Source: Macrostomum lignano (taxonomy: Eukaryota). From it: a stretch of 64,000 bases of DNA. The stretch spans positions 101,413-165,412 of the forward strand of contig NIVC01002517.1 of assembly GCA_002269645.1 (NCBI GenBank), given 5' to 3'. Below are positions 5,961-53,343 of the stretch, piece by piece. The translations under genes were made by a program, and so were the position numbers. The number at the start of each line of letters is the position of its first letter. The first letter of the stretch is position 1. The notes under the pieces were generated by a model. That model saw nothing but the letters and a program-made list of their open reading frames with translations. It was not told where the DNA came from and ran no database searches.

Positions 5961-8900
5961 TCAAAGCGACTGAAATACGTTATACTTCTCAGAGAAAGAG
6001 ACTGCGCTCATTTTGACTTGATTTCGGCGATTCTGCCCGATCCGGGCGCGCATGTCGGCCAGGCTGACATTGCCGAGCGGGTCAGCGCCGGTGGTCGGCG
6101 CGGCCGGCGGCGGCAGCTGCGACGGGGCGGACTTTTGTGGTAACGGTGCAGCTCTGAGAGACTGCGGCTGGCTCTCCTGCTGCTGAATGAGGCAGTTTAG
6201 AGAGGTTATGAGATGTTTGCCCAGGCTGGGGGTATGGGAAGTTCGCCTGGCAACTGAGGATCTGGGAGGCTGGCCTAGCAACTGAAAATCTGGCAGGCTG
6301 GCACAGCAACTGATGATCTCGGAGGCTGGCCCAGCAACTGAGGATCTGGGAAGGAGGTTGGCGCAGCAACCGAGGATGTGGGAGGCTGTCCCAGCAACTG
6401 AGGATCTGGTAGGCTGGCTCAGCAAATGAGGATCTGGTAGGCTGGCTCAGCAAATGAGGATCTGGTAGGCTGGTTCAGCAACTGAGAATCTGGGAGGCTG
6501 GCACAGCAACTGAGGATCTGGTAGGCTGGCTCAGCAAATGAGAATCTGGGAGGCTGGCACAGCAACTGAGGATCTGGGAGGCTGGCACAGCAACTGAGGA
6601 TCTGGGAGGCTGGCCCAGCAACTGAGGATCTGGGAGGCTGGCACAGCAACTGAGGATCTGGTAGGCTGGCACAGCAACTGAGGATCTGGTAGGCTGGCAC
6701 AGCAACTGAGGATCTGGGAGGCTGGCACAGCAACTGAGGATCTGGGAGGCTGGCACAGCAACTGAGGATCTGGGAGGCTGTCCCAGCAAATGAGGATCTG
6801 GTAGGCTGGCACAGCAACTGAGGATCTGGTAGGCTGGCACAGCAACTGAGGATCTGGGAGGCTGGCACAGCAACTGAGGATCTGGGAGGCTGGCACAGCA
6901 ACTGAGGATCTGGGAGGCTGGCACAGCAACTGAGGATCTGGGAGGCTGGCTGGCACAGCAACTGAGGATCTGGGAGGCTGGCACAGCAACTGAGAATCTG
7001 GGAGGCTGGCACAGCAACTGAGAATCTGGAAGGCTGGCACAGCAACTGAGGATCTGGGAGGCTGGCACAGCAACTGAGGATCTGGGAGGCTGGCACAGCA
7101 ACTGAGGATCTGGGAGGGCCAGCGAGTGCAAGCAGCCAGCAGGCTCACCGGCGCCTCAGCAGACTGAACAGATGCGCTGTCGCTGGCCGCGGCGCAGTCG
7201 GCGTTGCCGCTGTCCTTCTCTGCCGACATGCTGGCCTCGACGGGCCGGCGGTCGGGCGTGACGCAACGAACAACGCCGGGCACGGCGGAGCTGAGCTGCA
7301 GGCCGGCTTGCCGGAAGCGCCGGAGCGACTGCGGGCTGCAGACGAACAGGTCGACCCGGCCCGGCTGCGCCTTCACCCGGCTGACCACCGTGGCGTGCGA
7401 GGCGTCTTCTGTGAGGGGGGCAGTGCAATTTGTTAGACAGGGTATGACAGTCTGTTAGACAGGGTAGATAGAAGCCTGTTAGACAGGGTGTATAGAAGTC
7501 TGTTAGACAGGATATAGAAATGAGGCAGCTTGTTATAAATCATCTATATTACTTATAGCAGTAGCTAATCGCAACTTTTTATCCTGGCCAATCAGCAAAT
7601 TTCTTCCCCTTTTTGTTTAAATTACAGGTTTGTTAAAACGATACTTTGTTAAAAATTCCTTTTTATTTTTGTTTAAATGTCTTATGTTCACCCCCCCTCC
7701 TTTGTCAACGATTATATAAAGAGACAACTTGGACCGCCAAATATACAACTCGCGCTCACCCTCGTTTCTCAACTAAAAACTCAATAACTCTTAGCGATTG
7801 GAGTGTTCAACCTTAAACTTCCGCTAAGACTTGTTTTCGCTTTTTTATTTATTGAATAGGGAAACTTGAGGTCGTGGAGACCAAGAATTAGGGATCTGAA
7901 TAGGGAAACTTGAGGTCGTGGAGACCAAGAATTAGGGATCTGAATAGGGAAACTTGAGGTCGTGGAGACCAAGAATTAGGGATCTGAATAGGGAAACTTG
8001 AGGTCGTGGAGACCAAGAATTAGGGATCTGAATAGGGAAACTTGAGGTCGTGGAGACCAAGAATTAGGGATTTAAATAGGGAAACTTGAGGTCGTGGAGA
8101 CCAAGAATTAGGGATTTAAATAGGGAAACTTGAGGTCGTGGAGACCAAGAATTAGGGATTTAAATAGGGAAACTTGAGGTCGTGGAGACCAAGAATTAGG
8201 GATTTAAATAGGGAAACTTGAGGTCGTGGAGACCAAGAATTAGGGATTTAAATAGGGAAACTTGAGGTCGTGGAGACCAAGAATTAGGGATTTAAATAGG
8301 GAAACTTGAGGTCGTGGAGACCAAGAATTAGGGATTTAAATAGGGAAACTTGAGGTCGTGGAGACCAAGAATTAGGGATCTGAATAGGGAAACTTGAGGT
8401 CGTGGAGACCAAGCATAGAAACCTGAGTAGGGAGATCGAGATCGTATAGATCTTAAGAAAGCCGTGCGGGCTAATAATAGACATTAAGGATTAGGCATTA
8501 GGAATAGTTTAGCTACTGCTGGACACCCTTGATCCTCGGAAAACGCTAGACTTTCGGACTAAAACTAGGGAATTAGACAGTGTCTTACCGCTCGGGCACT
8601 ACACGCTATCACAAGGTTTCCAAGAAATCGTGTGAAATTAGAGAAAGGTCATAGTTTAGGGCAGCCAATACCACTAGAAATAGACAGCTTAGTGATAAGA
8701 ACCAGAAAGTCTGTAAAGATTCAGTAGCTTTAAGGTGAAATTGCAGTTAGGAACGATTACGTCGGCGACACTTGGTGGGATATCGAAGAAGAAGGAAACA
8801 CGTCTGTGACAGAAATCTGTTAGAAAGTTTACATACATCTATAGATCTTTTTGCCAAGTGTATTTAGGAACCCATCAGACACTACTATTCTAATATTTGA

Positions 8901-9960
8901 CCTTGATTGGAAGCAATTAAAAATAGAACTATTGGTATAGTATATAAACAAAAGCAACTTATAACAAGTTTTTCTGGGCAGAAATTAGTTTCATTGATTT
9001 TAGTTCATAAAAATGATCATTGGGTACTAGACACAATTACATGCTTCATTCTAGGTAGTAATTTTAGGAATCTATCTCCAAAATTTGGCAGCTCTCTACT
9101 TGCCATGAATACATATTTAGATAACTATATTATACTGTCTAAAGTTATATTTTACTTCTAGATTGTAATTTAGTATGCAAACTAAAACTATGTATTTGCA
9201 TATCAAGTATTTTGCAATATTTGCAGTCAATTAGGTTTTAGGAAAAAGCTTCTCCAACTATATCTATATTAACACTCATTAAGTAGTGTTATACTGGGCC
9301 TACTTAAAATTTGTTGAAGCTTAATAATTGCCATCAGCATCAGATATAGCTATTTTATTATGTATCAATACATTTTGTAGCAAAAAAGAACAATACTCAA
9401 TAATGACAAAACACAACAATTTTTAGATAAAATAGATACCATCATATCATAATAAATAAATATCATCATATACACCATATTATATAAAAACCCAGTCAAA
9501 TAATTGCAATTTCTCTGTCCTTGATTACCATTAAAATATATAATATATCTTGAAAATCAATCAGCTCAAGGTTATTACTGAAAGTAATTATTTTTGTTTA
9601 AAGTAAAGCAAAGTAAAACAAACAACAATAAGATAAATAATACATGTAAACAAATTTTCACAAGAACAGCATACTGAAAATTTGAATAAAAACAGTGTAA
9701 GCTATATTGGATATCTCGAAAAGTAGTTGTCAATAAACTAAGCAATAATGAATATACTTACCAACATTTATTCCATTGACTTCAATCACAATATCATTTG
9801 CTCGCAGACCACCAAGAGCAGCTGGAGACAGAGGATCAACTTTGCCAATAAACTGCCCTGTCTTCCCCTTCTCTGCATGAAGATTGAATCCATAACCAGC
9901 AAAGTCATCCCACTTTCTAAGCATGCATAGTCGTGGCTTCTGGTTTTCAGGAACATTCAT
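5961..9960 (-). CDS. NHERF1: NHERF/EBP50 (Sip1-like) single-PDZ scaffold protein, 3 exons, ~226 aa
   Basis: Exons 9960-9762, 7408-7149 and 6182-5961 have GT-AG sites and consistent phases (1, 0). The spliced PDZ reads PRLCMLRKWDDFAGYGFNLHAEKGKTGQFIGKVDPLSPAALGGLRANDIVIEVNGINV-E-DASHATVVSRVKAQPGRVDLFV. The C-terminal ERM-binding-type helix reads LADMRARIGQNRRNQVKMSAVSFSEKYNVFQSL*. Family-level assignment only. Confidence 0.85.
6230..7120. repeat. 28-bp minisatellite (~30 copies) filling NHERF intron 2
   Basis: Unit gctggcacagcaactgaggatctgggag. The overlapping ORFs at 6082-7131 repeat every 28 aa, as expected for 3 x 28 nt. Confidence 0.95.
7855..8412. repeat. 44-bp tandem array (~12.5 copies) in NHERF intron 1
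   Basis: Unit aatagggaaacttgaggtcgtggagaccaagaattagggat(ctg/tta), period 44 (7861/7905). Confidence 0.95.
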
Positions 9961-10691
9961 TGATTCGATGGCGTCTTTGAAAACAAAAATCGATGTTTAT
10001 GCTTCCATTAAAATTAAAGTATTATGAGTAGTAGGACTAGGAGTAGTAGGATTAGGAGCAGTATCAAAACATGTAAAATTGCAAAAACACAGACAAAAAT
10101 AACAAAAAGGACAGAATACAGACTTTATATAAAATAATATAATGAAATAGGTTACTCAAATGTATGTTGGTGTATGAGTGTGAATTCGACTTCGACAGGG
10201 AAACAAAATGCAGCTTCTTTGAAAATTGATTTTTTAATTTATATGTGCACGATAACTTACGTAATTTTCAAATCCGTCGGGTTATATGGTCAACTATATC
10301 TATCAGACTGGAGAGCTTGTCTTTAATGCATTATCTTTTAGTGCATTCAAATTATATAGTTTGATGATAAATATACAATAATTTTTCATAGAAATGGATA
10401 GATTCGAGCAAACACGCATCGTGAATATTATCCGACGAAGTTAAAACGCAATAATAATAATAGACATCTCAAAGCTGTACGTACATGTGCCTGTGAAAAC
10501 CGTGAGAAGGGAAATTCGAACCAATGTTAATTATATACATGATTGATTTTTTGCTGAAAATGCTGTTGCGAGTTACTGGCGCCCTACTAGACAAACTAGA
10601 CAAACAGTCTTTGCAGTCTTAATTTATTTGCGGTAAAGTTGCGCGTCTCAGAAAAAGTAGAATTAAGAAGGTGAGCGCTATCATTTTTTAT

Positions 10692-11843: not shown

Positions 11844-14015
11844 TACCACGGTGCAGATAAATGCTGCTACCTCCTCGTGGTCAGAGCGGAGAGCCGCACT
11901 TAACTGCTGCGGCGGCCAAATGCGGCAGGACCTGCTTTGCCAGCGCCTTTAACACCGCGCTGGGCGAGAATCGTGGAAGTGCCGAGTATGCGGAAGTGTG
12001 CGCTGCAGTCAGAACCGCCTCGGAGCAAGCAGTCCCGATGATGCAACCGGCTCAACGTGGGCAGCCGGTCTGGCAGGACGACCCTGCGATTCAGGCAGCG
12101 AGGGAAGATCTGGAGAGGCTCCGCTTGAGCAGGCGACCAACCCGCGAGGCAGAGGCAGCTCTGGCGGCTGTCTACCTGCAGCGCCAACAAGCGGCTGTCG
12201 ATGACGCCATTCAGGCTGTCTCTGCCGCTGGGCCCGATGCCAGAGGGCACGTGGCCTGGTCCGCCATCAACTCTCTGACGGGGCGAAAGCGGCGCAATCC
12301 GCTGAACCTGGCTGGTGACACTCCGGACGAGTGCAGGAACGAGCCGCGCGAGTTCTTCGCCGCCATCGTTAACGCGCCGCCACCCCCGCTGTCAGACAGT
12401 CTGACGCTGCCGCCGGAGACGCCGTTGCCGGCAGAGAAGAGTTTCAGCGTAGCCCCAGTCAACGCAGCCGACGTTGTCAAGCTCGCCCAGCAGTCACCGG
12501 GCGGGAAAGCGCTGGGTCCGGACGAGGTGCCCATCGAGGCGCTGCGCATCCCCTGTGTGGCCGCTGAGGTCGCCAGAGTGATGAACCGCGTGCTCTTCGG
12601 TGAGGCGGCGCCCAACGAATGGACCACGGCGCACATCGTCGCTGTTCCAAAGAAGCCGGGCACCACTATGCTTGAAGACCATCGAGGCATCTGCCTTCAG
12701 TTCTGTGCAGCGAAGCTGTTCAACCGGATGCTGCTTTCGCGGTTGCAGCCTGTGCTGGATCCGTACCTGCGCCCAGAGCAGAACGGGTTCCGGCCCCATC
12801 GCGGCACAGTGGCGCAGATCCTGGCTCTTCGCCGAGTCATCGAGGAGGCGCAGATTCGCCAGTCGCTCCTGATTCTAATCTTTATAGATTTCAAGAAGGC
12901 TTTCGACTCGGTTGTCAGAGCCGTGCTTCCAATGGTGCTCCGCGCGTACAACGTGCCTGAGCAGCTGATCTCCGCCATCATGGCGATGTACCGTGATACG
13001 AAAGCTGCTGTGACAACACCGGACGGCCTATCGGACTCCTTTGAGACATCCTCCGGAGTACTTCAGGGAGATACGCTGGCGCCGTTCCTGTTCGTCCTGG
13101 TGCTTGACTGGGTGCTGCGGACTGCTCTTCCTACCGACGACGACGGCTTTCTGCTGCGGCGACGCATAGGTTGACGTCAACCGGAGAAGCGGCTCAGCGT
13201 GCTTGGCTACGCCGACGACCTCGCCCTGCTGTCCTCGACCATCGAGGGCGCCCAACGGCAGCTGGACAGGCTAGTTGTCGTTGCGGCGAGCGTCGGCCTG
13301 GTGGTCAACACGCAGAAGACCGTTGTGCTCTGCGTGCCGGACGACACCGAGGCTGCAATATTCTGCCGAGGCGCTGACGGGCAGTCGACCGAACTCCCGC
13401 GATGTCAGCAGTTCGTCTACCTCGGCGGTCTGGTTCCAGACGCTCGCGAGGACCTGCGACGCCGCCGCGGGCTTGCCTGGGCTCCTTTTTGTTCTGTGAG
13501 GGCAGTCCTGCAGTCCGAGGCCCTACCGGACCGCCAGAGGGCGGCGCTGTTCCAGGCGGTAATCGAGACCGTCCTGCTGTACAACGCCGAGACCTGGACG
13601 CTGACGGACTCACTCGAACAGCAAGTCGATGCGGCGCACGCTGGCCTGCTGCGCGCCGCCTTCAACATCGGCGTCGAGCGGGTCACCAACGCGGCACTCT
13701 ATCGCCGCGCTGGCCTGCCACGTCCAAGTGATCTACTGCGCCGTCGGGGACTCCAGCTAGCAGGCCATCTCATCCGCGCCGAGTCGTACTGCCCACAGCC
13801 GGTGCAGGAGGTGCTGCTGCTCACGCTGCAGGCACCCTACCGGCGAGGTCAAGCGCGAACTCGGCGTTATGTCCACTGTCTGCTGGCTGACGCCGGCGCC
13901 CCAGACACTGCCGGTGGCGCGGCCTTTGTTCGCGCCCAAGCCATGAAGCGCGCCCTGTGACGCTGACTTTTGCCATCTTGACAGCGTATTTTGTTTTTTT
14001 TGTTGTTGTTGTTGT
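11844..14015 (+). mobile_element. 5'-truncated non-LTR retrotransposon (RTE-like LINE), RT ORF with one premature stop
   Basis: ORFs 11861..13174 and 13199..13960 are in the same frame, separated by a single TGA at 13172-13174. RT motifs are present: KALGPDEVP, EQNGFRPHRGT, FIDFKKAFDSV, GVLQGDTLAPFLF, LGYADDLALL, FVYLG. No endonuclease is seen, and there is a (TTG)n tail near 14000. The clade call is tentative. Confidence 0.9.
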
Positions 14016-14574
14016 AGACAAACAACAACAAAGCGACAAATAACACGTACGTACAATTCGCGTAAGCTATTGCTCTCATTACAACAGCGTCAATCTATCG
14101 ATGGATTCTAAATTCTCTGCATAATTCTTCCATTTTTTATACAACCCCGAGGCAGACTCCTGAAAGAAATTTACAGCTGTATGGGCAAGGACTTCTAGAC
14201 TAAGTCTAGCTAAGTCTAGAAGTCCTTGTGTATGGGTTGCACATTCACTATATTCCATTAAGGACATGCATGTACATGTACGACTTAAGTATTTTAAGCG
14301 TAGCTACCATAAGGACGACTTAATTACCATATTATCGTATATTATCAATTTAAGTATAGTCATTCATATTTGCATGTGCTTAAGTCGCCCTCGATTAATC
14401 CATGTCACATTTACAGGTTATACTAGCAATCTTCGCCCCCCGATGGGGGACATCTGGATAGAATCTCTGTTCTCTACAATTAACAAAAAGACAGCCAAAA
14501 AATCCTTCACAAAGACAACAGACAAACTGCTCAAATGAAGTGAATTGCAATAAGAAATCTTCCCAAGACCACAA

Positions 14575-27069: not shown

Positions 27070-27906
27070 TCAGTCTCTGAGGTACCGATTGTAGAATTCT
27101 CGCACGTTCAAGATCACCTTGCTCTTGTCTCGCATGTGCAGCTCCACGGCCTCAATGTCTGGCAGGCGAATCTCCCTGGCGCCGTACCGTAGGACGGGCA
27201 GCTGCGACTCGCCTGTGGATGCGGCCGGCGGCGGTGGCGGTGGCGGGGGAGGCGGCGGCGGCGCCTGCAGGACTTGTTTCGGTGGAGAAGGAGCAGCAGG
27301 CGGAGACCTCGACCGCTGACTGGCCAGGCCGGCAGGTCCTCCGCCGCTGCGACCGGTGTACACCTCCATGTTGTTCCGATATGTGCCCAGGTCCGGTGGC
27401 GGAGGAGGACTTTGCGAACGTAGATGGTGCTGCTGCCGCTGCTGCTGCTGCTGGAGCTGCTGCGAGTCACGTGGCATCATGCCGGCAGCAGCTGGATTCC
27501 GGTAGCGCTCAACTGACACGGGCGGCGGCGGCTCCCGGCTGCTCGCCAGCGGCTCCGGATCTGGCAGAGGCGGCGGTGGTGGTGGCGGCAGCGCAACCCT
27601 CTGACGCTCCAGGGCTTCTAGCGGCTCTTGCTGACTGTAAGCGCCGTTGTACGGCTTCAAAGGCCACTGCGGCTGACGCTGCTCGTGCTCCTGTTGCAGC
27701 CGCTGCAGCTGCATGGCCTGCTGCTCGGTGAGGAAGTTGCCGTACTCGGCGCCCGCCGTGCTGCTGTGGCTGTTCCTCACGTCCAGTGCGTAGTTTCTCA
27801 GGCCCTCCGGCGCCGTGATCAGCGAGGCTTTCTTGCCGTCGTAGAAATTGCCGTAAGTGTCGTTTGTTGTGAAGCCGGGCATGTAGGTTCTCTTGTAGAT
27901 GGCCAT
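27070..27906 (-). CDS. Uncharacterised Pro/Gln-rich protein (278 aa)
   Basis: ATG-to-TGA ORF with the same GC-rich codon usage as the host genes. It has poly-P and poly-Q tracts and globular-looking termini (C-terminus REIRLPDIEAVELHMRDKSKVILNVREFYNRYLRD). Confidence 0.65.
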   Translation of the reverse strand: MAIYKRTYMPGFTTNDTYGNFYDGKKASLITAPEGLRNYALDVRNSHSSTAGAEYGNFLTEQQAMQLQRLQQEHEQRQPQWPLKPYNGAYSQQEPLEALERQRVALPPPPPPPLPDPEPLASSREPPPPVSVERYRNPAAAGMMPRDSQQLQQQQQRQQHHLRSQSPPPPPDLGTYRNNMEVYTGRSGGGPAGLASQRSRSPPAAPSPPKQVLQAPPPPPPPPPPPPAASTGESQLPVLRYGAREIRLPDIEAVELHMRDKSKVILNVREFYNRYLRD

Positions 27907-30389: not shown

Positions 30390-33300
30390 ATGACCATCTC
30401 CAAGCGTTGGTCGGTTGCGAGAAATCTTCTGGTCCTTCTGCTTCTAATAACGATTGTTCTCAATGGTGAGGTGGGCTTTTGTTTAGATCGATGCTTTCTA
30501 GCTCTGTTCCACACCCTGCATCCACCGTCCTACAAGCTGCACCCTTTGTCCCACACCCTGCACCCTATGTCCCACACCCTGCACCCTCTGTCCCACACCC
30601 TGAACCCTCTGTCCCACACCCTGCACCCTCTGTCCCACACCCTGCACCCTCTGTCCCACACCCTGCACCCTCTGTCCCACACCCTGCACCCTCTGTCCCA
30701 CACCCTGCACCCTCTGTCCCACACCCTGCACCCTCTGTCCCACACCCTGCACCCTCTGTCCCACACCCTGAACCCTCTGTCCTACACCCTGCACCCTCTG
30801 TCCCACACCCTGCACCCTCTGTCCCACACTCTGCACCCTCTGTCCCACACCCTGCACCCTCTGTCCCACACTCTGCACCCTCTGTCCCACACTCTGCACC
30901 CTCTGTCCCACACTCTGCACCCTATGTCCCACACCCTACACCCTCTGTCCTACACCCTGCACCGAAATTTTTTATTTTTTGTGTGCTTAGTTTTTAAAAA
31001 ATGAATTTTTCCTGGCCTAACAAAGTCAATAAGCAGTTCAAAATTCCTTAAAACTTTATTAAACGCGAAGCTACTAAAATTAATTAATCAGAATAGGACT
31101 CTTATTTAGAAGCCGTTATTGCCTACCTCGCGAGGACAGAAAAATCATAAATCATAAATCATAAAGCATAAATCATAAGCCATAAATCATGAATCATATA
31201 TCATAAATCATAAATCATAAATCATAAATCATAAATCATAAAGCATAGATCATAAGTCATAAATCATGAATCATAAATCATAAGTCATAATTTTCAAAGA
31301 CCGACGATATTGATTTTAACTGCTCTACCATGCGATTTGGCCTCAGTGGTTGCCAATCAAAGCTGGTTTGTCCCCCTCCATTGATCAGCAGTTGCTGCCC
31401 TCCCCTACAATTTGCGATGGCGAGCGCTTGAATTGCTAGTCAGTCAATCAGTCAAGTGAGCAGTGCTCAAGAATGGGCGCTCTGATTTGGTGTTGCTACG
31501 CTGATTTAGATGGCTGTTTTAATCTGAGATTTGCGATGAGATCGGAGTGTTGCTGATTTTCATGATGATGAGAATTAATCATTACAAAAAGTTCTGGACA
31601 AATAAAGAGGGTCTATGAAGATTCACGATTCTGATTGCAAAATCTTGTTTTGAGAGTTGGATTGCAAAATCGTGACTCTGATTGCAAAATCGTGACTCTT
31701 ATTGCAAAATCGTGTGTCTGATTGCAGAATCGTGACTCTGATTGCAAAATCGTGTGATTCTGATTGCAAAATCTCGTGAGTCTGATTGCAAAATCGTATG
31801 GGTCAGAATGCAAAATATTGTGAGTCTGATTGCAAAATCTCGTGACTCTGATTGCAGAATCGTGACTCTGATTGTAAAATCGTGTGAGTCTGATTGCAAA
31901 ATCGTGTAGCTCTGATTGCAAAATCGTGAGTCTGATTGCAAAATCGTGTGAGTTTGATTGCAAAATCGTGTGAGCCTGATTGCCAAATCGTGACTCTGAT
32001 TGCAAAATCGTGACTCTGATTGCAAAATCGTGACTCTGATTGCCAAATCGTGACTCTGATTGCCAAATCGTGACTCTGATTGCAAAATCGTGACTCTGAT
32101 TGCAAAATCGTGACTCTGATTACAAAATCTCGTGAGTCTGATTGCAAAATCGTGACTCTGATTGCAGAATCTCGTGAGTCTGATTGCAAAATCGTGACTC
32201 TGATTGCAGAATCTCGTGAGTCTGATTGCAAACTTGTAAGTCTAATTGCTAAATCTCGTGAGTCTGATTGCAAAATCGTGTGAGTCTGATTGCAAAATCG
32301 TGTAAGTCTAATTGCTAAATCTCGTGACTCTGATTGCAAAATCTCGTGAGTCTGATTGCAAAATCGTGTGAGTCTGATTGCAAAATCGTGTGAGTCTGAT
32401 TGCAAAATCTTGTGAGTCTGATTGCAAAATCGTGTGAGTCTGATTGCAAAATCGTGTAAGTCTAATTGCTAAATCTCGTGACTCTGATTGCAAAATCTCG
32501 TGAGTCTGATTGCAAAATCGTGTGAGTCTGATTGCAAAATCTAGTGAGTCTGGTTGCAAAATCTAGTGAGTCTGATTGCAAAATCTAGTGAGTCTGGTTG
32601 CAAAATCTTGTGAGTCTGATTGCAAAATCTCGTGACTCTGATTGCAAAATCGTGACTCTGATTGCAGAATCGTGTGAGTCTGGTTGCAAAATCTCGTGAC
32701 TCTGATTGCAAAATCGTGAGTCTGATTGCAAAATCGTGACTCTGATTGCAAAATCGTGAGTCTGATTGCAAAATCGTGACTCTGATTGCAGAATCGTGTG
32801 AGTCTAATTGCAAAATCGTGACTCTGATTGCAAAATCGTGACTCTGATTGCAGAATCGTGACTCTGATTGCAGAATCGTGACTCTGATTGCAAAATCGTG
32901 TGAGCCTGATTGCCAAATCGTGACTCTGATTGCAAAATCGTGACTCTGATTACAAAATCTCGTGAGCCTGATTGCCAAATCGTGACTCTGATTGCAAAAT
33001 CGTGACTCTGATTACAAAATCTCGTGAGCCTGATTGCCAAATCGTGACTCTGATTGCCAAATCGTGACTCTGATTGCAAAATCGTGAGTCTGATTACAAA
33101 ATCTCGTGAGTCTGATTGCTAAATCTTGTGAGTCTGATTGCAAAATCTTGTGAGTCTGATTGCAAAATCGTGTGAGTCTAATTGCAAAATCGTGTGAGTC
33201 TGATTGCAAAATCTTGTGAGTCTGATTGCAAAATCTTGTGAGTCTGATTGCTAAATCTTGTGAGTCTGATTGCAAAATCGTGTGAGTCTGATTGTTAAAT

Positions 33301-35060
33301 CGTGAGTCTGATTGCAAAATCGTGTGAGTCTGATTGCCAAATCGTGAGTCTGATTGCAAAATCTTGTGAGTCTGATTGCTAAATCTTGTGACTCTGATTG
33401 CAAAATCGTGTGAGTCTGATTGCAAAATCTCGTGAGTCTGATTGCAAAATCTCGTGAGTCTGATTGCAAAATCGTGACTCTGATTGCAAAATCGTGAGTC
33501 TGATTGCAAAATCGTGACTCTGATAGCAAAATCGTGAGTCTGATTGCAAAATCGTGTAGCTCTGATTGCAAAATTGTGTGGCTCTGATTGCAAATATAGG
33601 GAATGTCTGAATGCTGAATCAGTTTTGAAAAGAAAGAGTTTTTTTCATTTTAATATTTTTCATTGAAGTCCCGGAGCGCTGCCTTCAGATTTTTTAATGC
33701 ACTTTCCAGGGATTATGTATTTGTATGCGATAGATACAGATTAATAACGGAAGATATTCAGTAAGGAGGCCTCCATGCAGCTTATATAAGAAACCGTGGG
33801 AGAAGGGATCAAGATCGGAGAATTAGGTGGCCAAAAATGGTGAATAAGATTTGCATTAACCACTGCAATATCCGGACTAGATTATAGTGGGAAAGCAGTA
33901 GTATTGTTATTGATTGGAAAATCTTTTAGCTCCTACGAACTATACAGAGGACCTGACCGCTGGAATATAATCGATTAGCTATGAAAGCCTTGAAAACGGA
34001 ATCAAGCTTGGATCGTTAGAGCTGCACTGACCTCGTTAAAGTTTGTTTAACTGCATGACTTTTCATGCTGCCTCTCGTTATATGCAATCAGACTGACTGA
34101 TAATATTTCTGTAGCCTATGACTGTAGCCTTGAATTTTTTAACCTGCCACTATCCCTCTCAGAACTTCAGTAACCTGCCGCTATCCCTCTCAGAACTCCA
34201 GTAACCTGCCGTTTTCCGCCTCTCGGAACTCCAGTAACCTGCCGCTATCCCTCTCAGAACTTCAGTAACCTGCCGCTATCCCTATCAGAACTCCAGTAAC
34301 CTGCCGCTATCCCTCTCAGAACTCCATCTCATTTCTCCTCGCCCTCCTTCGGTGTCCCAGGCGCCCGCGCCGGTAGAAATGAGAAGCGTCTGCTGCAGCA
34401 CCTGCTTGAAAACAAATCAAATCTGCACAACCCGATGGAGCGGCCTGTTGAGAACGACACCGAGATTCTGTACGTCTGGTTCAAGGTGTCACTGCAGCAG
34501 ATTATCGATGTGGTAAGTTGCCTATCGTTTTGTGGCGCAAATCAGGTTTTACTCCATAATTTTTCCTTGTTTTCACTTTTCATTTTTATAGGATGAGAAA
34601 AATCAAATTCTATTCTCGAGTATTTGGTTGGACTTGGTAAGTGGGCTTCGTGTGTCCAAGTTTTAATTTTGCTCTTTTCTACCGTCAAATTCATTTTTTC
34701 AGTCGTGGACAGATTATCACTTCAAGTGGGACCCCGCGGACTTTGGCAACATCACTAAAATTAACATCGACCCAAAGAGAGTCTGGCGACCGGACGTGCT
34801 GCTGTACAACAGGTTGGAGACTGCTTAGGCTGTCCATAGAGTGAATTCAATTCTTACTCGACCCCCAGTTCCCCCATCCGCTCACCAACTCAGTCTTTTT
34901 TATTAGAGGCATGAGGGCTAACCCTGGTGCACTTAAGGACATTTTCACACATTCTCACACTCGCACAACCGGCGATAGGCATTGCTGCCCATTCCACCGA
35001 CTCCCCTGAGCAGGCACACAAGCGCGCGGATACGTACGCAGTCATACGCACCGGCACACA

Positions 35061-35112
<52 letters not shown>

Positions 35113-38100
35113 AGTTTACAGCGACCCTAACTTTATTTATCGTTAGGCATGTACACTTCCCTGTGCCTTGGGGCTTGGCCCTCAATGGCGTTAATTGCAC
35201 AAGCAGAGCTAAGCCGAGATTCCAATTCAGCCCCAAACTAATGTCACTGCACTTGGAATCGAGCCTGGGCCACTGGCACATCAGAGCGCCGCGCCAGACC
35301 ACTGGGCTACGCCCCCACCAACTCAGTCATTCTCTCATACAAGCCGTAAGATATCAATGAAGCCTCCCTATCTTTTGACGATTTTTTTTAATAGCGCGGA
35401 CGAAAAATTTGACGCCACTTATCCGACCAACGTGGTGATCGACAACACGGGCTTCATGACCTACATACCGCCCGGCATGTTCAAGTCCACCTGCAAGATC
35501 GACATCACTTGGTTCCCATTCGATATGCAGGAGTGTCTGATGAAGTTCGGCTCGTGGACTTACGACGGCGGGACAGTTGATCTGCGTTTCAAGTGCGCCA
35601 ACGAGAGTCTCAAGTCTGTGCAGGACCGGCTGAACGATCCGCGACGTTGCACCGAGAGAGGCAGCGGCGACACGTCCAACTATGTGAAGAGCGGGGAGTG
35701 GAACCTGGAAGGTGCGTCTCTTGCATGGAAGTTCTAGAAGCTCGTTTGAGTGGTCTAGATGGACTTTTAATGACGTCCGCTAGCGAAATTATTTCATTCA
35801 GATTGAATCTACGACTTGGGGTTATCGGTGATAGTGGGCAAAGCAACTCACGTCAGCGGTAATGTCCTGACACTCGCCAAACACCCTATATTCAGGGTCT
35901 AGTGTACAGAAATTTTTCCCCAAGCTTGTCCGTTGTCTTTCACGTCCGTGAGGGCCAGATCAAAAAACAGATGCCTGCTCGCTGGATAGATTATCGCATT
36001 GATTAAGAGACTCCCTTTTAAACTAACAAACGAAGGTTTTTAATTCCATCAGGTCTGTTAAAATGACAACTAACCGAATTTGATGCTGATGCGCCCGTCA
36101 ACTCGCGACAATTTCACTCGCCATCAACTCCATGCAGGCCTGTGGGGCGTTCGAACCGGCAAACTCTACGATTGCTGCCCGCATCCGTTTGTTGACCTGA
36201 AATTTTACATGCGCATACGCAGGCGCCAGCTTTACTTTTTGTTCAACATGCTGGGCCCGGTGGCATTTCTGTCCACTTTAGCAATACTCTGCTTTCTAAT
36301 TCCGCCAGACGATGGCGAGAAAGTCTGCTTCGGTGTGTTGATAGAGCTGTCAATGAGTTGTGGGCGTCACAAATGACAACTGTACACAGGGCTTTGATGT
36401 CCTGACTTTGTGTCAGATGTTTTGCAAACAAGAGCGCGCAAACGGCCTAAATACGCTCGTATATTTTGCACTACTTTGCTGAAACGTGCGCAAAATTTAT
36501 TTCTCACGATCTACAAACGTATAGTCCGCCTTATCTGCGCGTTATCCTTACACATCAAAAGCTCTATTAGCCCTTTTACAGAACATAAGCTATATCTCAA
36601 ATTAAAATCTCTCCGACCCTAGATTGACCAACACCCTCCGACCCTAGATTGACCAACACCCCTCCGACCCTAGATTGACCAACACCCCTCCGACCCTAGA
36701 TTGACTAACACCCCTCCGACCCTAGATTGACCAACATCCCTCCGACCCTAGATTGACCAACACCCCTCCGACCCTAGATTGACCAACACCCCTCCGACCC
36801 TAGATTGACCAACACCCCTCCGACCCTAGATTGACCAACACCCCTCCGACCCTAGATTGACCAACACCCCTCCGACCCTAGATTGACCAACACCCCTCCG
36901 ACCCTAGATTGACCAACACCCCTCCGACCCTAGATTGACCAACACCCCTTCGACCATAGATTGACCAACACCCCTCCGACCCTTAGATTGACCAACACCT
37001 CCATCGACCTTAGACTGGCCAGCACCTCCTTCAAACCTCGACTGACCGACGCACTCACTCCATTCATTCTCCATTGAACAAAAAGCCAATGGACAAAGAC
37101 AGGTAAAATGATTCTCGATCCCCACGGCCCTTTAGTACCCCAAATATACTCGCCTTCCAACGCAGGCATGCCGGGTCAGAGAACCGCTTTACTGTACGAC
37201 TGCTGCCCGTTTCCCTTCATCGACCTGAAGTACCGCATCAAGATTCGTCGGCGGACCTTATACTACGGCTTCAACCTTATCATACCGTGCGTGCTTATCT
37301 CCACTATGACACTGCTCACCTTCCTCCTGCCGCCGGACGCAGGGGAGAAAATCTCTCTCGGTACGTACGCTCGTACGCGACAATTGGCATGTCTTTGCTC
37401 TGCAATGCTTATCAAAGTTTTGTCAAATGTAGATCCAATGTAGGAAAATCATGGATAACAGATTGTTGTCATTTTAGACACGTTTCCGACCGTGTAATTA
37501 GATCCTCACTATATATTTTAAAGCATCAGATTCATTGCATTGTACAGGCGTGACAATACTATTGTCACTTATCATGTTTCTGCTACTAGTAGCAGACGCG
37601 ATGCCGCAGACCTCGGAGTCTCTGCCGCTGATTGGTAAACTTCTAGAGCAGTCCATGTTATCACTGTCAAATTAAATCTTGAACGATGTACAGGCTTAGT
37701 TATCTTCTGTTTTGTGTTATCGTTGTGCTTCATGTTGTCAATATCGACTGTCTGAATTTAAGCTTTCGAACGTTCTACTAATCCAATGTGCCATGCATGT
37801 TGCATGACTCACTGCTCTACTAACTCTATTTATAGGAGTCACTATCCTGCTGTCGCTCACCGTCTTCCTCATGACGGTTGGAGAGGCCATGCCCGCCACC
37901 TCGGACTCGGTGCCAGTCATCGGTAGGTGAACTCAGCAGGCGTCTTGCAACTCCTTCTTAAGCAAATTAGGAAACAATTGAGAGTTAAGAAGATTACTCT
38001 GTATCTATGCAGAGCTGAGACCAGAATCCAGGAGGGACTGAGACCAGAATCCAGGAGGGACTGAGACCAGAATCCAGGAGGGACTGAGACCAGAATCCAG

Positions 38101-41038
38101 GAGGGACTGAGACCAGAATCCATGAGGGACTGAGACCAGAATCCAGCAGGGACTGAGACCAGAATCCATGAGGGACTGAGACCAGAATCCATGAGGGACT
38201 GAGACCAGAATCCATGACGGACTGAGACCAGAATCCATGACGGACTGAGACCAGAATCCATGACGGACTGAGACCAGAATCCATGAGGGACTGAGACCAG
38301 AATCCATGAGGGACTGAGACCAGAATCCTTGAGGGACTGAGACCAGAATCCATGAGGGACTGAGACCAGAATCCAGCAGGGACTGAGACCAGAATCCATG
38401 AGGGACTGAGACCAGAATCCATGAGGGACTGAGACCAGAATCCATGAGGCACTGAGACCAGAATCCATGATGGACTGAGACCAGAATCCATGAGGGACTG
38501 AGACCAGAATCCATGAGAGACTGAGACCAGAATCCATGAGGGACTGAGACCAGAATCCTTGAGGGACTGAGACCAGAATCCATGAGGGACTGAGACCAGA
38601 ATCCAGGAGGGACTGAGACCAGAATCCATGAGGGACTGAGACCAGAATCCATGAGGGACTGAGACCAGAATCCATGAGGCACTGAGACCAGAATCCATGA
38701 TGGACTGAGACCAGAATCCATGACGGACTGAGACCAGAATCCATGAGGGACTGAGACCAGAATCCATGAGGGACTGAGACCAGAATCCATGAGGGACTGA
38801 GACCAAAATCCATGAGGGACTGAGACCAGAATCCATGAGAGACTGAGACCAGAATCCATGAGGGACTGAGACCAGAATCCATGAGGGACTGAGACCAGAA
38901 TCCAGGAGGGACTGAGACCAGAATCCATGAGGGACTGAGACCAGAATCCATGAGGGACTGAGACCAGAATCCATGATGACTTTGACCAGACCCACGAAGT
39001 CCGGGTTCAGATTCCAGTAACCTGTATTTTGTCCATCGGTTACTAATGCCACATTTTCTGTTTCTGATTCCAATGAAACTAGAACAAATTCTGATATTAC
39101 TTAACTAATTTACATGCACTTGCAAAATTAGTATTAACATATGACTAACTTACCCCAACGCTACCCCAAGGCTGATAGACAGTTGATACAAACCGAGCCA
39201 ATTAAAACTTTGCGCTGTGGCATTTCAGGCATGTACTTTGCCTGCACAATGATCATGTGCAGTCTGTCGGTGGTATTCACGGTGATTGTGCTCAACTATC
39301 ATCACAGGAATGCGGAGTCTCATCCCATACCTAACTGGGTGAGTGAGATCACTATGCTTGCGTCATTTGCAGTGTAGTGAGCTGAAGTCAATGGCTCTGA
39401 CAATGCTGCTGAGTGTATATTCGAACTAGATTTGTCAGTACAGTGGAACAGGTCACGTTTTCTTTGCCCGGATCAACCCTAGCTACTCAAACTCAAGCGG
39501 TTAACCTAAAATGCTATTTGATACATTTAACTAGATTTGAGGCGACAAATTATCAGATAAAAATTACAGCTGCAGGAGGGCCGTGGGGCACCCCGGCGCG
39601 ACCGCCCTCGGTGACATCGTCTCACAACCAGCGCTGACGGCAATTCTGCCCGTTCCGCTGGCTCCTGAGCACAATTTACGAGCTACACGGTTTAGCGCTG
39701 AGTTGCTGATCTGCTCTGCTTAGCGAAAGTCAGTGAGAGACTCACTTTAGCCAGCCGGGTTGGCCTGTCGGTGCATGTGTCCCGTCGCATTCATAGCCGG
39801 TCTCGAGCCCTAAATTGAGACAATAATCAGCCAATCCACTCAATAATGCAGGTTCGCAAGTTCATCTGCGTCTACCTGGCCAGCATTCTGTGCATGCGGC
39901 ACCACGGGCGGACGGAGCACTCCGAGCCAATCAGAGTGCGACGCCGGCTGAGCGACTGGCAGCGCAGGGCCAGCCAACTGCAGCGCCGCTCCGGCGGCCT
40001 GGAACTGCGGGAGCGCTGCTCGAAATCTTTGCTGGCGAATGTGCTGGACATTGAAGACAATTTCCGAACATCCGTGCACCGGCAGCAGCGACCATCAATA
40101 AGGTAGCTCTTTTCGATGATGTACATACAACGTTATAGTAATAAATAACTAATGTACAAGCGTAGAAGGCCGCTCAGGTGCTTTCTAAATGGATTTAGCA
40201 AAGATGTTTTACAAAATCTGTCTATAAAAATCAAGGACCACCAGGAACACTTCGTTATTATAAGGACGTAACACTCGATTCGTGTAAAAATAGTTGAAGG
40301 CCGATTTTCGTTCTCGTATGTAAATTAGTGAGATAGACGAATTGCATGATTTTCAACATAATGTACTGAGTGCAGAAGCCTAGTAGTCCTTGATAAAAAT
40401 TACAACGAAGAGACAGGACTGACGGTAGTTTTGCCAGAATAATAATATCAGATTGATTTTTCTGAAATTAACCAGCTTTAACTGGATAAAACAGTGATTT
40501 TTTTACAAAATCGACTTTGAGCCTAAGTTCATTCCTCACCAAATTATACGGACTGAGAGTTCAAGGCTGGAAGGCATCAGAGTTTGGCACCAGCACATAG
40601 CACAGAGTCAGAACTGGACGTCATTGCAGATCGTATCCGACTGGACTGACGGCGTCCTTTGATGAGACGCACGGCTGGGGCCAAGAGCGCCCGCTGCCGC
40701 ACCAGCAGCTGCCGACTGACTCGCCGACCTCCTACAGTGCTTGCCAACCCGGCCGGCGCGCCCGCGACGCCTCAACCGACTGGGGATCGCAACTGGACCA
40801 GCCGGATCCGAAACAACCCGACGACTGCAACAGCCAGGCCGAGCTGGAGGCCATCATTCAGGAGCTTCGCTTTGTCACCAGGAAGATCGCGAACGACGTG
40901 GCCGACGGAGAAGTCAGCAGCGAGTGGAAATTCGCAGCTAGAGTGATTGACCGGCTCTGTCTGATCCTGTTCTCCGGCTTCACTCTGATTGCAACCTGTG
41001 CCATTCTGTTCTCTGCTCCGGACGTGTTCAAAGGCTGA
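30390..41038 (+). CDS. CHRNA7: Nicotinic acetylcholine receptor alpha subunit, alpha7-like (583 aa per isoform)
   Basis: Exons: 30390-30465 (signal peptide), 34361-34512, 34592-34636, 34703-34812, 35395-35711, [36138-36332 or 37166-37360], [37548-37634 or 37836-37922], 39229-39338, 39852-40102, 40630-41038. All are GT-AG and phase-consistent, summing to 1752 nt. Motifs: Cys-loop [20 protein letters not shown], vicinal YDCC, GEK, TM2 [10 protein letters not shown]3 [10 protein letters not shown]4 [17 protein letters not shown]. The 45/110/195/87/110-bp exon sizes match vertebrate alpha7 exons. The symbol means alpha7-like, not proven orthology. Confidence 0.92.
30505..30965. repeat. 21-bp minisatellite (~22 copies), nAChR intron 1
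   Basis: Unit cacaccctgcaccctctgtcc. Confidence 0.95.
31143..31290. repeat. 7-bp repeat (ATAAATC)n, nAChR intron 1
   Basis: About 20 imperfect copies. Confidence 0.9.
31615..33595. repeat. 20/22-bp minisatellite, ~2 kb, nAChR intron 1
   Basis: Unit ctgattgcaaaatcgtgact with 22-bp variants (atcgtgtgagt, atctcgtgagt). Confidence 0.95.
34135..34325. repeat. 31-bp tandem array (~6 copies) abutting the nAChR exon 2 acceptor
   Basis: Unit aacctgccgctatccctctcagaactccagt, period 31 (34141/34172/34203). Confidence 0.9.
36138..36332 (+). CDS. nAChR alternative exon 7a (loop C + TM1), divergent duplicate
   Basis: Boundaries catgcag|GC and TTCG|gtgtgt; 195 bp, phase 1-1. Translates [66 protein letters not shown]. 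Confidence 0.8.
36610..37040. repeat. 26-bp minisatellite between exons 7a and 7b
   Basis: Unit ccgaccctagattgaccaacacccct, about 16 copies, degenerating at the 3' end. Confidence 0.95.
37166..37360 (+). CDS. nAChR alternative exon 7b (loop C + TM1), canonical-like
   Basis: Boundaries aacgcag|GC and CTCG|gtacgt; 195 bp, phase 1-1. Translates [66 protein letters not shown]. Confidence 0.9.
37548..37634 (+). CDS. nAChR alternative exon 8a (TM2)
   Basis: Boundaries tgtacag|GC and ATTG|gtaaac; 87 bp. Translates [30 protein letters not shown]. Confidence 0.85.
37836..37922 (+). CDS. nAChR alternative exon 8b (TM2)
   Basis: Boundaries ttatag|GA and ATCG|gtaggt; 87 bp, with a TACTAAC branch point at 37818-37824. 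Translates [30 protein letters not shown]. Confidence 0.88.
38015..38975. repeat. 23-bp minisatellite (~42 copies) downstream of exon 8b
   Basis: Unit gagaccagaatccatgagggact, period 23 (38017/38040). Confidence 0.95.
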
Positions 41039-50728: not shown

Positions 50729-53343
50729 GAACTTTAAACTAGCTGACTACTGTAGGCCTCCCAAACTGGAAGGCAACATTTTAAATCTACACCCTACCTT
50801 CAAACTCTCCGAGTCTGAGACGAGGCTGCTAGATAAGGGACTCAATTTTATCCCAACCCAAGCCCTTGATTTCGATGAGTTGAGGAACTGCATGACGGAA
50901 TTTCATCGTAAACTTTTCTGGAAAGACTTTTTCAAAAAGAGGGGTCTCGCCAATACCAGCCCGCCCCCCTTCACCGGGAAATCAGGGAAGGAGGTTCCCC
51001 TCAGACTTAGAAGGGATGAGTGCAACTTGTTGGTACTTGAGAACCAAAATCTGGTAGAGAATTTGACAACGGTACAGATCAAAAGCAACCTAGAGGCACC
51101 AGAGACCAGGGCGATTCAGAGGCTCAAGCGAAACAGCTCCGTCCTTATAAAAAAGGCGGACAAAGGCAACGCAGTGGTCATCATGCACCCTAAGGACTAC
51201 GAATTTGCAGCCTACAACCAACTGTTTGACACTGATGCCTATCAACAGCTGGACCAGCCATTGCAACCCGTGACTGCAGAACTTATTAGGGGAATCTTCC
51301 TCAATTTATGTAACAGAAAGTTCATATCTAAGAAACAGTGTGCATTTCTTTGTCCCGGAGAGAACTTCCGTCCCCGGCATTTCTACCTGCTCCCAAAAAT
51401 TCACAAGGACCCGGCCACCTGGCTGATCCCCTTTCGGGTCCCAGCAGGCAGACCTATTGTGAGCGGATGTAGTTCTGAAGCAATTGGGGCAGAAAAGTAC
51501 ATAGACTTCTTTCTTAAACCGATTGCCCAAGCGCAACCCACTTTCATTAAGGACTCCTATGACTTCAAGGCACACCTTATGGATAAAAGCTGCACGGAAG
51601 GTTCGACTCTGGCAACCTGTGATGTCCAGAGTCTGTACTCCATGATCCCAATAGATCAGGGCATTGCAGCGATCCAGGAATTCTTTAACCGATACCCGGA
51701 TCCCATTAGACCGGATGCTGAAATAATAAAGCTACTGGAATTGTGTTTGTACAGGAATGACTTTGAATTTGACAAAATGATTTTCCTACAACTTAGAGGC
51801 ACAGCCATGGGGCGCATATTTGCGCCCAGCTATGCCTGTCTCTTCATGAGCCTCTGGGAGGAAACTGCCCTGAGAACTGCTCTTTATAAGCCGAACATCT
51901 ATTTTAGGTACATAGATGATATCTTCATTCACTGGGACCACCCGGCTGAAACTCTGACAGAATTTGTTGTACACCTAAATTCAATCAACCCCAACATCAA
52001 ACTCACCGTCAGCTCCTCATCAACTGAGGTCAGTTTCCTTGACATGACCATCAGGAAAGCTGAAAACCGCTTCACAACACAACTGTTTTCAAAAGAAACA
52101 GACACTCATAGATTGTTGCACCGACAGTCCTTCCATCCGTCACACACCTTCAAGGGGTAGTAAAATCCCAAGTCCTTCGGTACGCTCGAATCTGTGATGA
52201 CTACAAGTCTTTCAACCGTGCTTTCAATTCTTTAAAATCGGAACTCAAGCAATTAGGCTACTCGAAGATTTTTCTTAGAAACTGCAAAAAGGAGGTCCTC
52301 ATACTTATGAACTGGACTGCAGGACCAACGACCAATCTGGGTCTGCTTCCCAAAGGGTTCCATCCCTGTGGGTCATCCCGTTGCAAATGCTGCACCCACT
52401 CACCGCCTGCTCTCTCCGCCCAGGGACTGCAACCGGCTTCTGGTTTTTTAATCTCTCAGAGCCTGTCCTGTGGCTCCAAGAACATCATCTATGGCATCTC
52501 CTGCAACCAGTGCCACCCTGGGAAAATCTTCTATGTAGGGATGACTAGAAGAACAATGAGAGATAGAATGAACCAGCACAGGTCAAATATTAACAGGAGA
52601 GTCGTAACTTCGGGGTCAGAGCACTTTCTCACCCCCAATCACTCAATTGCAAACTTTGTCTCCATTGCTATCGAACAAGTTCTTAACAACAACAAAATCG
52701 AACTAAGGGAAGAAATCTGGATTAAAAAACTAGGGACTGACAAACCGCCAGGCACGAACATCAGGGTCGACAATCATCTTCTCCGACCCATCCCAATGGT
52801 CCTTCCTTTTCACCCATCTACGGTCTGGCTTGCCAACGAGATTGCTAAAAACTTTGATAAGCTACAAAATAAACCAGGCTCCCGCATAATGCCCGCTTTT
52901 ACACGGCAACGTAACTTACAGAGCCTCCTGGCTCCCAATTAGTTCAAGTCTCAGCCAGGAAACATTTAATCATTTTAACCAATGCGCTATTTTCACCCTA
53001 TTAAAGTACAATATTTATTCACGTGTCATTTATTTTATTTTATTTTATTCAAACTGCTTAATTGTACGCTCAATATTGATTTTTATGCTCCTACCCCAAT
53101 ACCGGCATTTCATCTAATCGTATAGTATCGCATATCGTATAGTACTTCGAAATAACAATTTTTTATAACAAATATACTGTCGTTTAAAATGAATGGTGGA
53201 AAGCCTCTGGGACAAGTTAGAGCTAAGCAAAACAGGGTTTTAAATGTACATCCCTCATATGTACAACTACTCATCAATTCTATCAGACTAAGAAAAATAA
53301 TACTTAAAAGACCAACTTGAATTGCATGACACACAGATTTTTT

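Follow-up and report, generated by a model that had tools for sequence, protein, structure and literature searches.

Background

Alternative exons in genes of Cys-loop receptors are known mainly from insects, where the choice of exon in the alpha6 subunit of the nicotinic acetylcholine receptor (nAChR) affects insecticide sensitivity. Exons 3a/3b and 8a/8b/8c of alpha6 were reportedly described by Grauso and co-workers in 2002. The copies in each of these two clusters are mutually exclusive (Jin et al. 2007, PMC1919356). Here we consider a stretch of 64,000 nucleotides (nt) from the free-living flatworm Macrostomum lignano (contig NIVC01002517.1, positions 101,413 to 165,412 of the forward strand), called the window below. 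It contains an alpha7-like nAChR gene with two adjacent pairs of tandem exons, 7a/7b and 8a/8b, that probably serve as alternatives.

The Macrostomum gene and insect alpha6 belong to the same alpha7-like clade. In both, exon 8 is the same module, 87 nt or 29 residues long and with shared boundaries (VTxLLS...PLxG), and it encodes the second transmembrane segment M2 and the M2-M3 linker. In both, the exons were duplicated in tandem, have been retained by selection and are used, or in Macrostomum probably used, as alternatives. Tandem 29-residue modules are visible in insect gene models. However, alpha6 has an arthropod host, three copies of exon 8 and exon 3 as the partner cluster, whereas the Macrostomum gene has two copies and its partner cluster is exon 7. 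The flatworm duplication of exon 8 is, judging from sequence comparison, probably independent of that in insect alpha6.

Other mutually exclusive exons of Cys-loop receptor genes are exon 4/4' of insect alpha4, exons 3 and 6 of RDL and exon 3 of GluCl (PMC2064938). These too are equal-length tandem exons that diversify a ligand-gated channel. However, they are other exons encoding other regions, and none of them swaps ligand loop C together with the first transmembrane segment M1 and the pore-entry segment. In the open-access literature we found no paper on alternative loop C/M1 exon copies in alpha7-like genes, and no study of Macrostomum nicotinic receptors.

Results

Two duplicated exon pairs in an alpha7-like gene

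The window was searched by tblastn with human alpha7. The matches form a single locus on the plus strand at about 34.4 to 41.0 kb. The exon model, built from these matches, the reading of their flanks and the splice sites, is complete from exon 2 onward (Table 1), and all its introns are of the GT-AG type. A scan upstream of exon 2 did not locate the signal-peptide exon 1; 27713-27785 and 30390-30465 are unverified candidates. The exons are numbered after human CHRNA7, since the sizes 45/110/195/87/110 nt agree with those of CHRNA7 exons 3, 4, 7, 8 and 9.

The encoded protein contains the Pfam domains Neur_chan_LBD and Neur_chan_memb (E = 2e-61 and 1e-42 for the 7a+8a isoform, 7e-62 and 2e-50 for the 7b+8b isoform). 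Among solved structures, all best matches are to human alpha7 (E = 1e-106), followed by alpha4 (2e-81). The closest database proteins come from M. lignano itself, and the named neighbours are alpha7 or ACR-16-like. The hallmarks of nicotinic alpha subunits are present, namely Cys-x13-Cys in exon 5/6, and YDCC and GEK (with Glu at M2 -1') in both 7a and 7b. By these sequence characters the gene is assigned to the alpha7-like nAChR alpha subunits. Thus both the family and the non-arthropod host that the initial sequence-only reading had proposed are correct.

Two of the tblastn matches span residues 199-265 of human alpha7, and two span residues 264-302 (7a, 7e-17; 7b, 3e-22; 8a, 2e-3; 8b, 1e-8). 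The same search found no further copies of exon 7 or exon 8 in the window. All four exons are in phase 1 at both ends, the first two nucleotides completing a split glycine codon and one nucleotide being left at the end. The borders are cag/GC...TCG/gtgtgt in 7a, cag/GC...TCG/gtacgt in 7b, cag/GC...TTG/gtaaac in 8a and tag/GA...TCG/gtaggt in 8b. Exons 7a and 7b share 60% of nucleotides and 53% of amino acids; for 8a and 8b the values are 62% and about 64-66%. The introns between 7a and 7b, 7b and 8a, and 8a and 8b are 833, 187 and 201 nt long. All four one-of-each combinations give an open frame of 557 codons that ends at the same TGA.

Reading and translation of the locus confirmed both pairs where they had been placed, and both display the signs of adjacent-exon duplication: equal length, equal phase, homology and intact AG/GT splice sites. 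Criteria for tandem-duplicated mutually exclusive exons are said to have been given by Kondrashov and Koonin in 2001 and by Pillmann and co-workers in 2011. An assembly artefact or a haplotype duplication is ruled out, as identity between the copies is only about 60% and the copies are met again in independent loci and in other phyla.

Selection and Macrostomum paralogs

Three M. lignano loci were scanned, paralog C (L001), paralog B (L002) and a copy of B that is identical across the four exons (L003). Paralog B matches the window gene in having 7a, 7b, 8a and 8b and in their order, lengths and splice sites. In paralog C, exon 7 is of the 7b type only and exon 8 of the 8a type only. No relics of 7a or 8b turned up when this locus was searched for them; a minisatellite derived from the start of exon 8 was met instead. 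It lies in the intron before exon 8 (13752-14260, 42 nt x 12). Its unit consists of the 3' splice site and the first 20 nt of exon 8 (...ttgcag/GCGTGATGATCATGCTGTCACGC), and the array yields about 11 decoy acceptors, each in frame (14 codons). Local tandem duplication across the exon 8 boundary is still ongoing there.

Rates of nonsynonymous (dN) and synonymous (dS) substitution were measured between the window gene and paralog B, exon by exon (Table 1). The dN/dS ratio is 0.17 for 7a, 0.06 for 7b, 0.11 for 8a and 0.06 for 8b (overall range 0.05-0.17), with synonymous sites near or at saturation. By these ratios purifying selection has long acted on all four exons, in agreement with what the sequence-only reading had deduced from the anatomy. 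The 7a and 7b exons of Macrostomum form separate clades with 91% and 93% bootstrap support. Thus the duplication of exon 7 is older than the radiation of the paralogs.

The exon 7 pair in other phyla

The loci of the closest non-flatworm homologs each contain two tandem copies of exon 7 with intact AG and GT, the divergent copy being the first (Table 1). A survey of spiralian genes had been proposed as a check. It recovered the exon 7 pair in two annelids, a nemertean and a brachiopod, and no second exon 8 in the loci scanned there. Schistosoma japonicum has a single exon 7 and a single exon 8.

Several positions distinguish the two types. The residue after RRR is Lys or Arg in three of the four Macrostomum 7a exons and in all annelid and nemertean 7a copies, Gln in the window gene, Ser in Lingula, and Thr in 7b. 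In the alignment, every 7a copy has a residue other than Gly in LYYx and Leu replacing Met in M1. Position 3' of M2 in the 7a copies is mostly Phe or Cys, and His in Lingula. In the tree of the C-terminal half of the exon (M1 to M2), all 7a exons fall together with 60% bootstrap support, and the arthropod duplicates fall with arthropod exons. In the loop C half, identity is 65% within species versus 53% between 7a exons of different phyla, which suggests either that this half co-evolved with the constant extracellular domain or that gene conversion took place.

On this sequence evidence, a single ancient origin of the 7a/7b pair is more likely than independent duplications followed by convergence, and the pair probably predates the split of flatworms, annelids, nemerteans and brachiopods. 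By the same comparison it is not specific to flatworms, being kept in four lophotrochozoan phyla.

Two copies of exon 7 beside two to four copies of exon 8 were also found in models from Timema, Schistocerca, termites, a cockroach, Rhodnius, Nilaparvata and a barnacle (example records: Timema A0A7R9..., Schistocerca XP_049830724.1, Amphibalanus XP_043210122.1). As in Macrostomum, the exon 7 duplicate of these hemimetabolous insect and barnacle alpha7-type genes adjoins the exon 8 cluster. However, the order is reversed, with the canonical copy first and the divergent copy second. The arthropod exon 7 copies group together, which points to a separate duplication in arthropods. In RefSeq models of Schistocerca, Rhodnius, Cryptotermes, Periplaneta, Nilaparvata and Amphibalanus (P0262, P0017, P0014, P0272, P0021 and P0285), the exon 7 copies are joined and exon 8 is swapped; the exceptions among the arthropod isoforms examined are two from Schistocerca (P0020, P0265). 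The joined models reflect either systematic errors or something odd; two M1 segments in one protein are implausible on grounds of topology.

The exon 8 pair

The 8b exon of the window gene is 76-83% identical to the single exon 8 of annelids, and that of paralog B reaches 90%. Exon 8a of the window gene is 79% identical to the sole exon 8 of S. japonicum and 72% identical to that of paralog C, and 8a groups with the trematode exon. The sole exon 8 is thus of the 8a type in paralog C and S. japonicum, and of the 8b type in the annelids, the nemertean and the brachiopod. Each type is the only exon 8 somewhere, and therefore both serve alone as the pore exon. By these affinities 8b is the ancestral type and 8a the flatworm-specific one, and the duplication is placed within flatworms, before the split of Macrostomum and trematodes, with 8a kept in the latter.

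Flatworm 8a is also 69-72% identical to one exon 8 variant of insect alpha7 (ADALPQTSEA motif). This likeness may reflect shared ancestry or convergence, the stretch being too short to tell them apart.

Probable use of the exons as alternatives

Annotated swapping of 7a and 7b is seen in the nemertean ortholog. The five RefSeq isoforms of Lineus longissimus (X1 being XP_064652926.1) are all 480 residues long, and in X3 (XP_064652944.1) and X6 (XP_064652968.1) 7a exactly replaces 7b. The pair has the same order as in Macrostomum, and Lineus 7a ends in GEKVSFG, as do the Macrostomum paralogs. However, Lineus has a single exon 8 and additional alternative pairs of exons 3 and 4, and its isoforms come from automated annotation alone. 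Exon 4 is exchanged in isoform X4, and four residues of exon 3 in X2. No paper on the Lineus exon 7 pair was found in the open-access literature.

The alternative pairs for exons 4 and 3 of Lineus were noted at 70553-70657 and 70715-70819 of the locus (L006) and in the RefSeq isoforms. In Tubulanus, exon 3 is the sole difference between isoforms X1 and X2. The exon swapped in these two genera corresponds to the same 45-nt position as exon 3 of the window gene and of human CHRNA7.

Among Macrostomum models, 7b is joined to 8a in NCBI PAA46756 and PAA54201, and 7a to 8b in UniProt A0A1I8JFT5 and A0A1I8HTB9 (paralog E). Four other UniProt models, A0A1I8G5P1, A0A1I8JBH6, A0A1I8GWB3 and A0A1I8H666, join 7a, 7b, 8a and 8b in one protein, and the frame stays open. 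The first two are identical to the window across the four exons, and A0A1I8GWB3 differs at one residue of 7a. The models with all four exons run through intron sequence before exon 5 and have no signal peptide. Thus they are ab initio artefacts and not evidence for co-inclusion. The same tandem joining error occurs in models of paralogs B and D.

A Cys-loop subunit with a doubled M1 and a doubled M2 would have its membrane topology inverted, and one copy only from each pair fits the four-helix topology. Together with the Lineus swap at constant length and the 7b+8a and 7a+8b models of Macrostomum paralogs, this makes use as alternatives, as originally suggested, the best reading. A profile search with seven 7a exons retrieved only anonymous single-exon metagenome fragments, some of them 7a-like, with no taxonomy and no junctions. 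A protein search with the 7a+8a junction segment gave no matches.

How exclusivity could be enforced

A frameshift followed by nonsense-mediated decay is ruled out, as 195 and 87 are multiples of three and the model with all four exons stays open; here the arithmetic of the earlier reading was right. Steric hindrance of the kind seen in exons 2 and 3 of alpha-tropomyosin is ruled out for the window gene by introns of 833 and 201 nt. Incompatibility of U2 and U12 splice sites, as in JNK, is also ruled out: none of the donors (GTGTGT, GTACGT, GTAAAC, GTAGGT) is U12-like and the acceptors are AG. In Owenia, the 7a-7b intron is only 72 nt long (L004, 52004-52075) and has a long pyrimidine tract. 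Such a short intron may sterically bar the splicing of 7a to 7b in that species.

Competing RNA structures were sought, that is, pairings between a docking site and selectors as in Dscam, 14-3-3xi and ATE1. In the inverted-repeat scan, a shared arm at 37465-37479 pairs with AAATGACAAC motifs at 36059-36070 and 36366-36380. The complements are a perfect 12-mer and a 15-mer of 87% identity, and about 0.4 perfect 12-mers are expected by chance, which leaves these repeats at the level of chance. Windowed duplex energies over all intron pairs were in no case better than those of shuffled controls. A candidate pairing that would loop out 7b and 8a in paralog B was equalled by none of 40 shuffles; against natural sequence it did not hold up, with 15% of random genomic windows matching it in paralog B and 36% in the window gene. 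Pairing of this kind is not supported.

A UGCAUG motif occurs at 35722-35727, 11 nt past the donor of exon 5/6. In paralog B its distance from this donor is 21 nt, and paralog C, which has no 7a, lacks the motif. Two more copies are found within 37794-37806, 35-42 nt upstream of 8b, and this pair is not common to paralog B. The idea that these Rbfox-type motifs are control elements is too thin to build on. A perfect TACTAAC is present at 37818-37824, 12 nt upstream of the 8b acceptor.

The likeliest means of exclusivity would be ordinary splice-site competition steered by trans-acting factors. As a working assumption, products of double inclusion would be lost as misfolded protein.

Other features of the locus

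The fusion of exons 5 and 6 is shared with Capitella, Lineus and Lingula, and the intron is kept in Owenia and S. japonicum. At 35594-35650 within exon 5/6 there is a 23-residue insertion relative to human alpha7, with two cysteines at its ends. It is common to the Macrostomum paralogs, and Schistosoma has a shorter form. Possibly it forms a loop close to loop F that is closed by a disulphide bond and specific to flatworms. In paralogs B and C, exon 5/6 is followed by a GC donor. Within intron 2 (79 nt), the in-frame translation of 34536-34569 resembles the exon 3 peptide KNQ(V/I)L..N/SIWL; the likeness may be due to chance or to a second copy of exon 3 that has decayed.

Several simple repeats surround the exons. 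Minisatellites are found at 32000-33594 (22 nt x 75) upstream of the gene, at 34140-34326 (31 nt x 6), ending 35 nt before exon 2, and at 38015-38990 (23 nt x 42) between 8b and exon 9. A (CA)28 run occupies 35055-35110 in the intron after exon 4.

Table 1. Exons and one intronic repeat of the M. lignano window gene, and exon 7 copies in non-flatworm loci. Values of dN, dS and identity at codon positions 1/2/3 are for the comparison with paralog B.
Locus	Feature	Position	Strand	Length	Remarks
Window gene	exon 2	34361-34512	+	152 nt	start of extracellular domain; from tblastn and splice sites
Window gene	exon 3	34592-34636	+	45 nt	one copy in this gene
Window gene	exon 4	34703-34812	+	110 nt	one copy in this gene
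Window gene	exon 5/6, fused	35395-35711	+	317 nt	Cys-loop; 23-residue insertion with two cysteines
Window gene	exon 7a	36138-36332	+	195 nt	divergent version; loop C to start of M2 (-1' to 4', GEKVCFG); dN 0.31, dS 1.77; identity 0.66/0.81/0.48
Window gene	minisatellite	36611-37026	+	26 nt x 16	inside the 833-nt 7a-7b intron
Window gene	exon 7b	37166-37360	+	195 nt	canonical alpha7-like version of the 7a segment (GEKISLG); dN 0.13, dS 2.21; identity 0.81/0.91/0.48
Window gene	exon 8a	37548-37634	+	87 nt	M2 from 5' and M2-M3 linker; flatworm-type; dN 0.10, dS 0.91; identity 0.86/0.93/0.57
Window gene	exon 8b	37836-37922	+	87 nt	M2 from 5' and M2-M3 linker; ancestral lophotrochozoan type; dN 0.12, dS 2.06; identity 0.86/0.93/0.39
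Window gene	exon 9	39229-39338	+	110 nt	M3
Window gene	exon 10	39852-40102	+	251 nt	intracellular loop; frame agrees with public models
Window gene	exon 11	40630-41038	+	409 nt	end of intracellular loop, M4; stop TGA 41036-41038
Owenia fusiformis	7a-like	51809-52003		195 nt	
Owenia fusiformis	7b-like	52076-52270		195 nt	
Capitella teleta	7a-like	7423-7617		195 nt	
Capitella teleta	7b-like	7768-7962		195 nt	
Lineus longissimus	7a-like	77693-77887		195 nt	
Lineus longissimus	7b-like	78677-78871		195 nt	
Lingula anatina	7a-like	9686-9883		198 nt	
Lingula anatina	7b-like	10381-10578		198 nt	

Discussion

The most plausible reading is that the alpha7-like gene of M. lignano carries two adjacent clusters of tandem exons and that one exon is taken from each, giving two to four isoforms; we put its probability at roughly 0.8. 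The anatomy, the selection on all four exons, the conservation of the exon 7 pair and the annotated swapping in the Lineus ortholog all fit. In the window gene itself the copies would be mutually exclusive, most simply through competition between their splice sites.

Several observations weigh against this reading. Firstly, exon 7a of the window gene is the fastest evolving, with 58-68% identity to the other Macrostomum 7a exons versus 82-91% for 7b, and it has lost the M1 cysteine (PC to PV). Secondly, the Macrostomum isoforms with one exon of each pair are annotation models, transcript-based or ab initio, and no NCBI-annotated product of the window locus is among the database matches, possibly because of low expression. 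Thirdly, no mechanism acting in cis was found among RNA pairing, steric hindrance, U12 sites and nonsense-mediated decay. Finally, the grouping of 7a exons across phyla has only moderate support, and in the C-terminal half the mean identity is 58% among 7a exons versus 60% between 7a and 7b.

A tentative alternative to free combination is a coupled switch that produces two isoforms only. Either the inner pair 7b+8a would be joined across the 187-nt intron, or the outer pair 7a+8b would be joined by removing 7b and 8a as one intron. The Macrostomum models contain only these two combinations (7b+8a in P0002, P0009 and P0022; 7a+8b in P0008 and P0246). Moreover, paralog C retains exactly 7b+8a, and models of paralog E hold 7a+8b only. 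However, the models are very few, come from different paralogs and have an uncertain evidential basis. Intron pairing that could loop out 7b and 8a does not exceed that of random genomic windows, and in annelids, the nemertean and the brachiopod both 7a and 7b join one exon 8.

It is improbable that 7a of the window gene, possibly with 8a, is decaying as a relic that splicing now skips, while its equivalents work in the paralogs. Of all Macrostomum 7a exons this one indeed sits on the longest branch, and it shows unusual substitutions (PC to PV, PPDAGEK to PPDDGEK, VSFG to VCFG) and weaker-looking splice signals, its donor being GTGTGT and its pyrimidine tract poor. However, its frame is open, its length, phase and both splice sites are intact, and dN/dS is 0.17 at dS of about 1.8. 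It keeps YDCC, RRR, the M1 proline and GEK, and among three assembly copies 7a varies at one residue.

That all four exons are included together, as in UniProt A0A1I8G5P1, A0A1I8JBH6 and A0A1I8GWB3, which join them in frame, and as in the arthropod RefSeq models with two joined exon 7 copies, can practically be dismissed, since the same UniProt models read through introns and lack a signal peptide, hence are ab initio, doubled M1 and M2 would invert the subunit, and the Lineus isoforms replace rather than add.

If one exon is indeed taken from each pair, the choice between 7a and 7b would replace loop C, the pre-M1 segment, M1, the M1-M2 linker and the pore mouth, and the choice between 8a and 8b would replace the rest of M2 and the M2-M3 gating linker. 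Exon 7 extends to the cytoplasmic mouth of the pore (M2 -3' to 4'). In loop C, YDCC is present in both copies, with the neighbours GKLY/PHPF in 7a versus ALLY/PFPF in 7b. At the start of M2, 7a and 7b differ at -3' (Asp/Ala), 2' (Cys/Ser) and 3' (Phe/Leu), and Glu at -1' is kept. Exons 8a and 8b differ at M2 positions 12', 13', 16', 17', 19' and 20', with Met/Val at 13', Leu-Leu/Met-Thr at 16'/17' and Asp/Glu at 20'. According to a passage of PMC2064938 that cites Bertrand et al. 1993 and Imoto et al. 1988, Ca2+ permeability and conductance of alpha7 are set by positions -1', 16', 17' and 20'. By analogy, probable differences between the isoforms concern their sensitivity to agonists, how they gate or desensitise, and their conductance or Ca2+ permeability. 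The swap of loop C, M1 and the selectivity-filter end of M2 as one segment is a natural domain-swap experiment. Its conservation across four lophotrochozoan phyla shows that these parts of alpha7-type receptors are exchangeable as a unit.

A more far-reaching scenario is speculative, and we consider it unlikely though worth stating. The exon 7 pair would be a single module of Lophotrochozoa more than 500 million years old, to which flatworms added the M2 module of exon 8. In Macrostomum the two would act as a coupled switch, and paralogs C (7b+8a) and E (7a+8b) would represent its two states, fixed by reciprocal exon loss. If true, nature would here offer a clean example of splice isoforms that became separate genes.

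The sequence-only reading regarded a duplicated exon 7 beside a duplicated exon 8 as new. This was overstated, as the exon 7 pair is present in annelids, a nemertean and a brachiopod and in RefSeq isoforms, and arthropod models combine both duplications. What is new here is a flatworm version of the exon swapping already known from insects, with a segment comprising loop C, M1 and the pore entry. The data suggest that, in the alpha7 lineage, exons were duplicated in tandem earlier and in more groups than one would gather from the literature on insects. Public models of the window locus and of several of its relatives are wrong, which matters for mining the receptor repertoires of flatworms; such errors matter also in parasitic relatives, which retain the 8a-type pore only. 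In M. lignano, one gene most likely makes two to four receptor types by exon choice.

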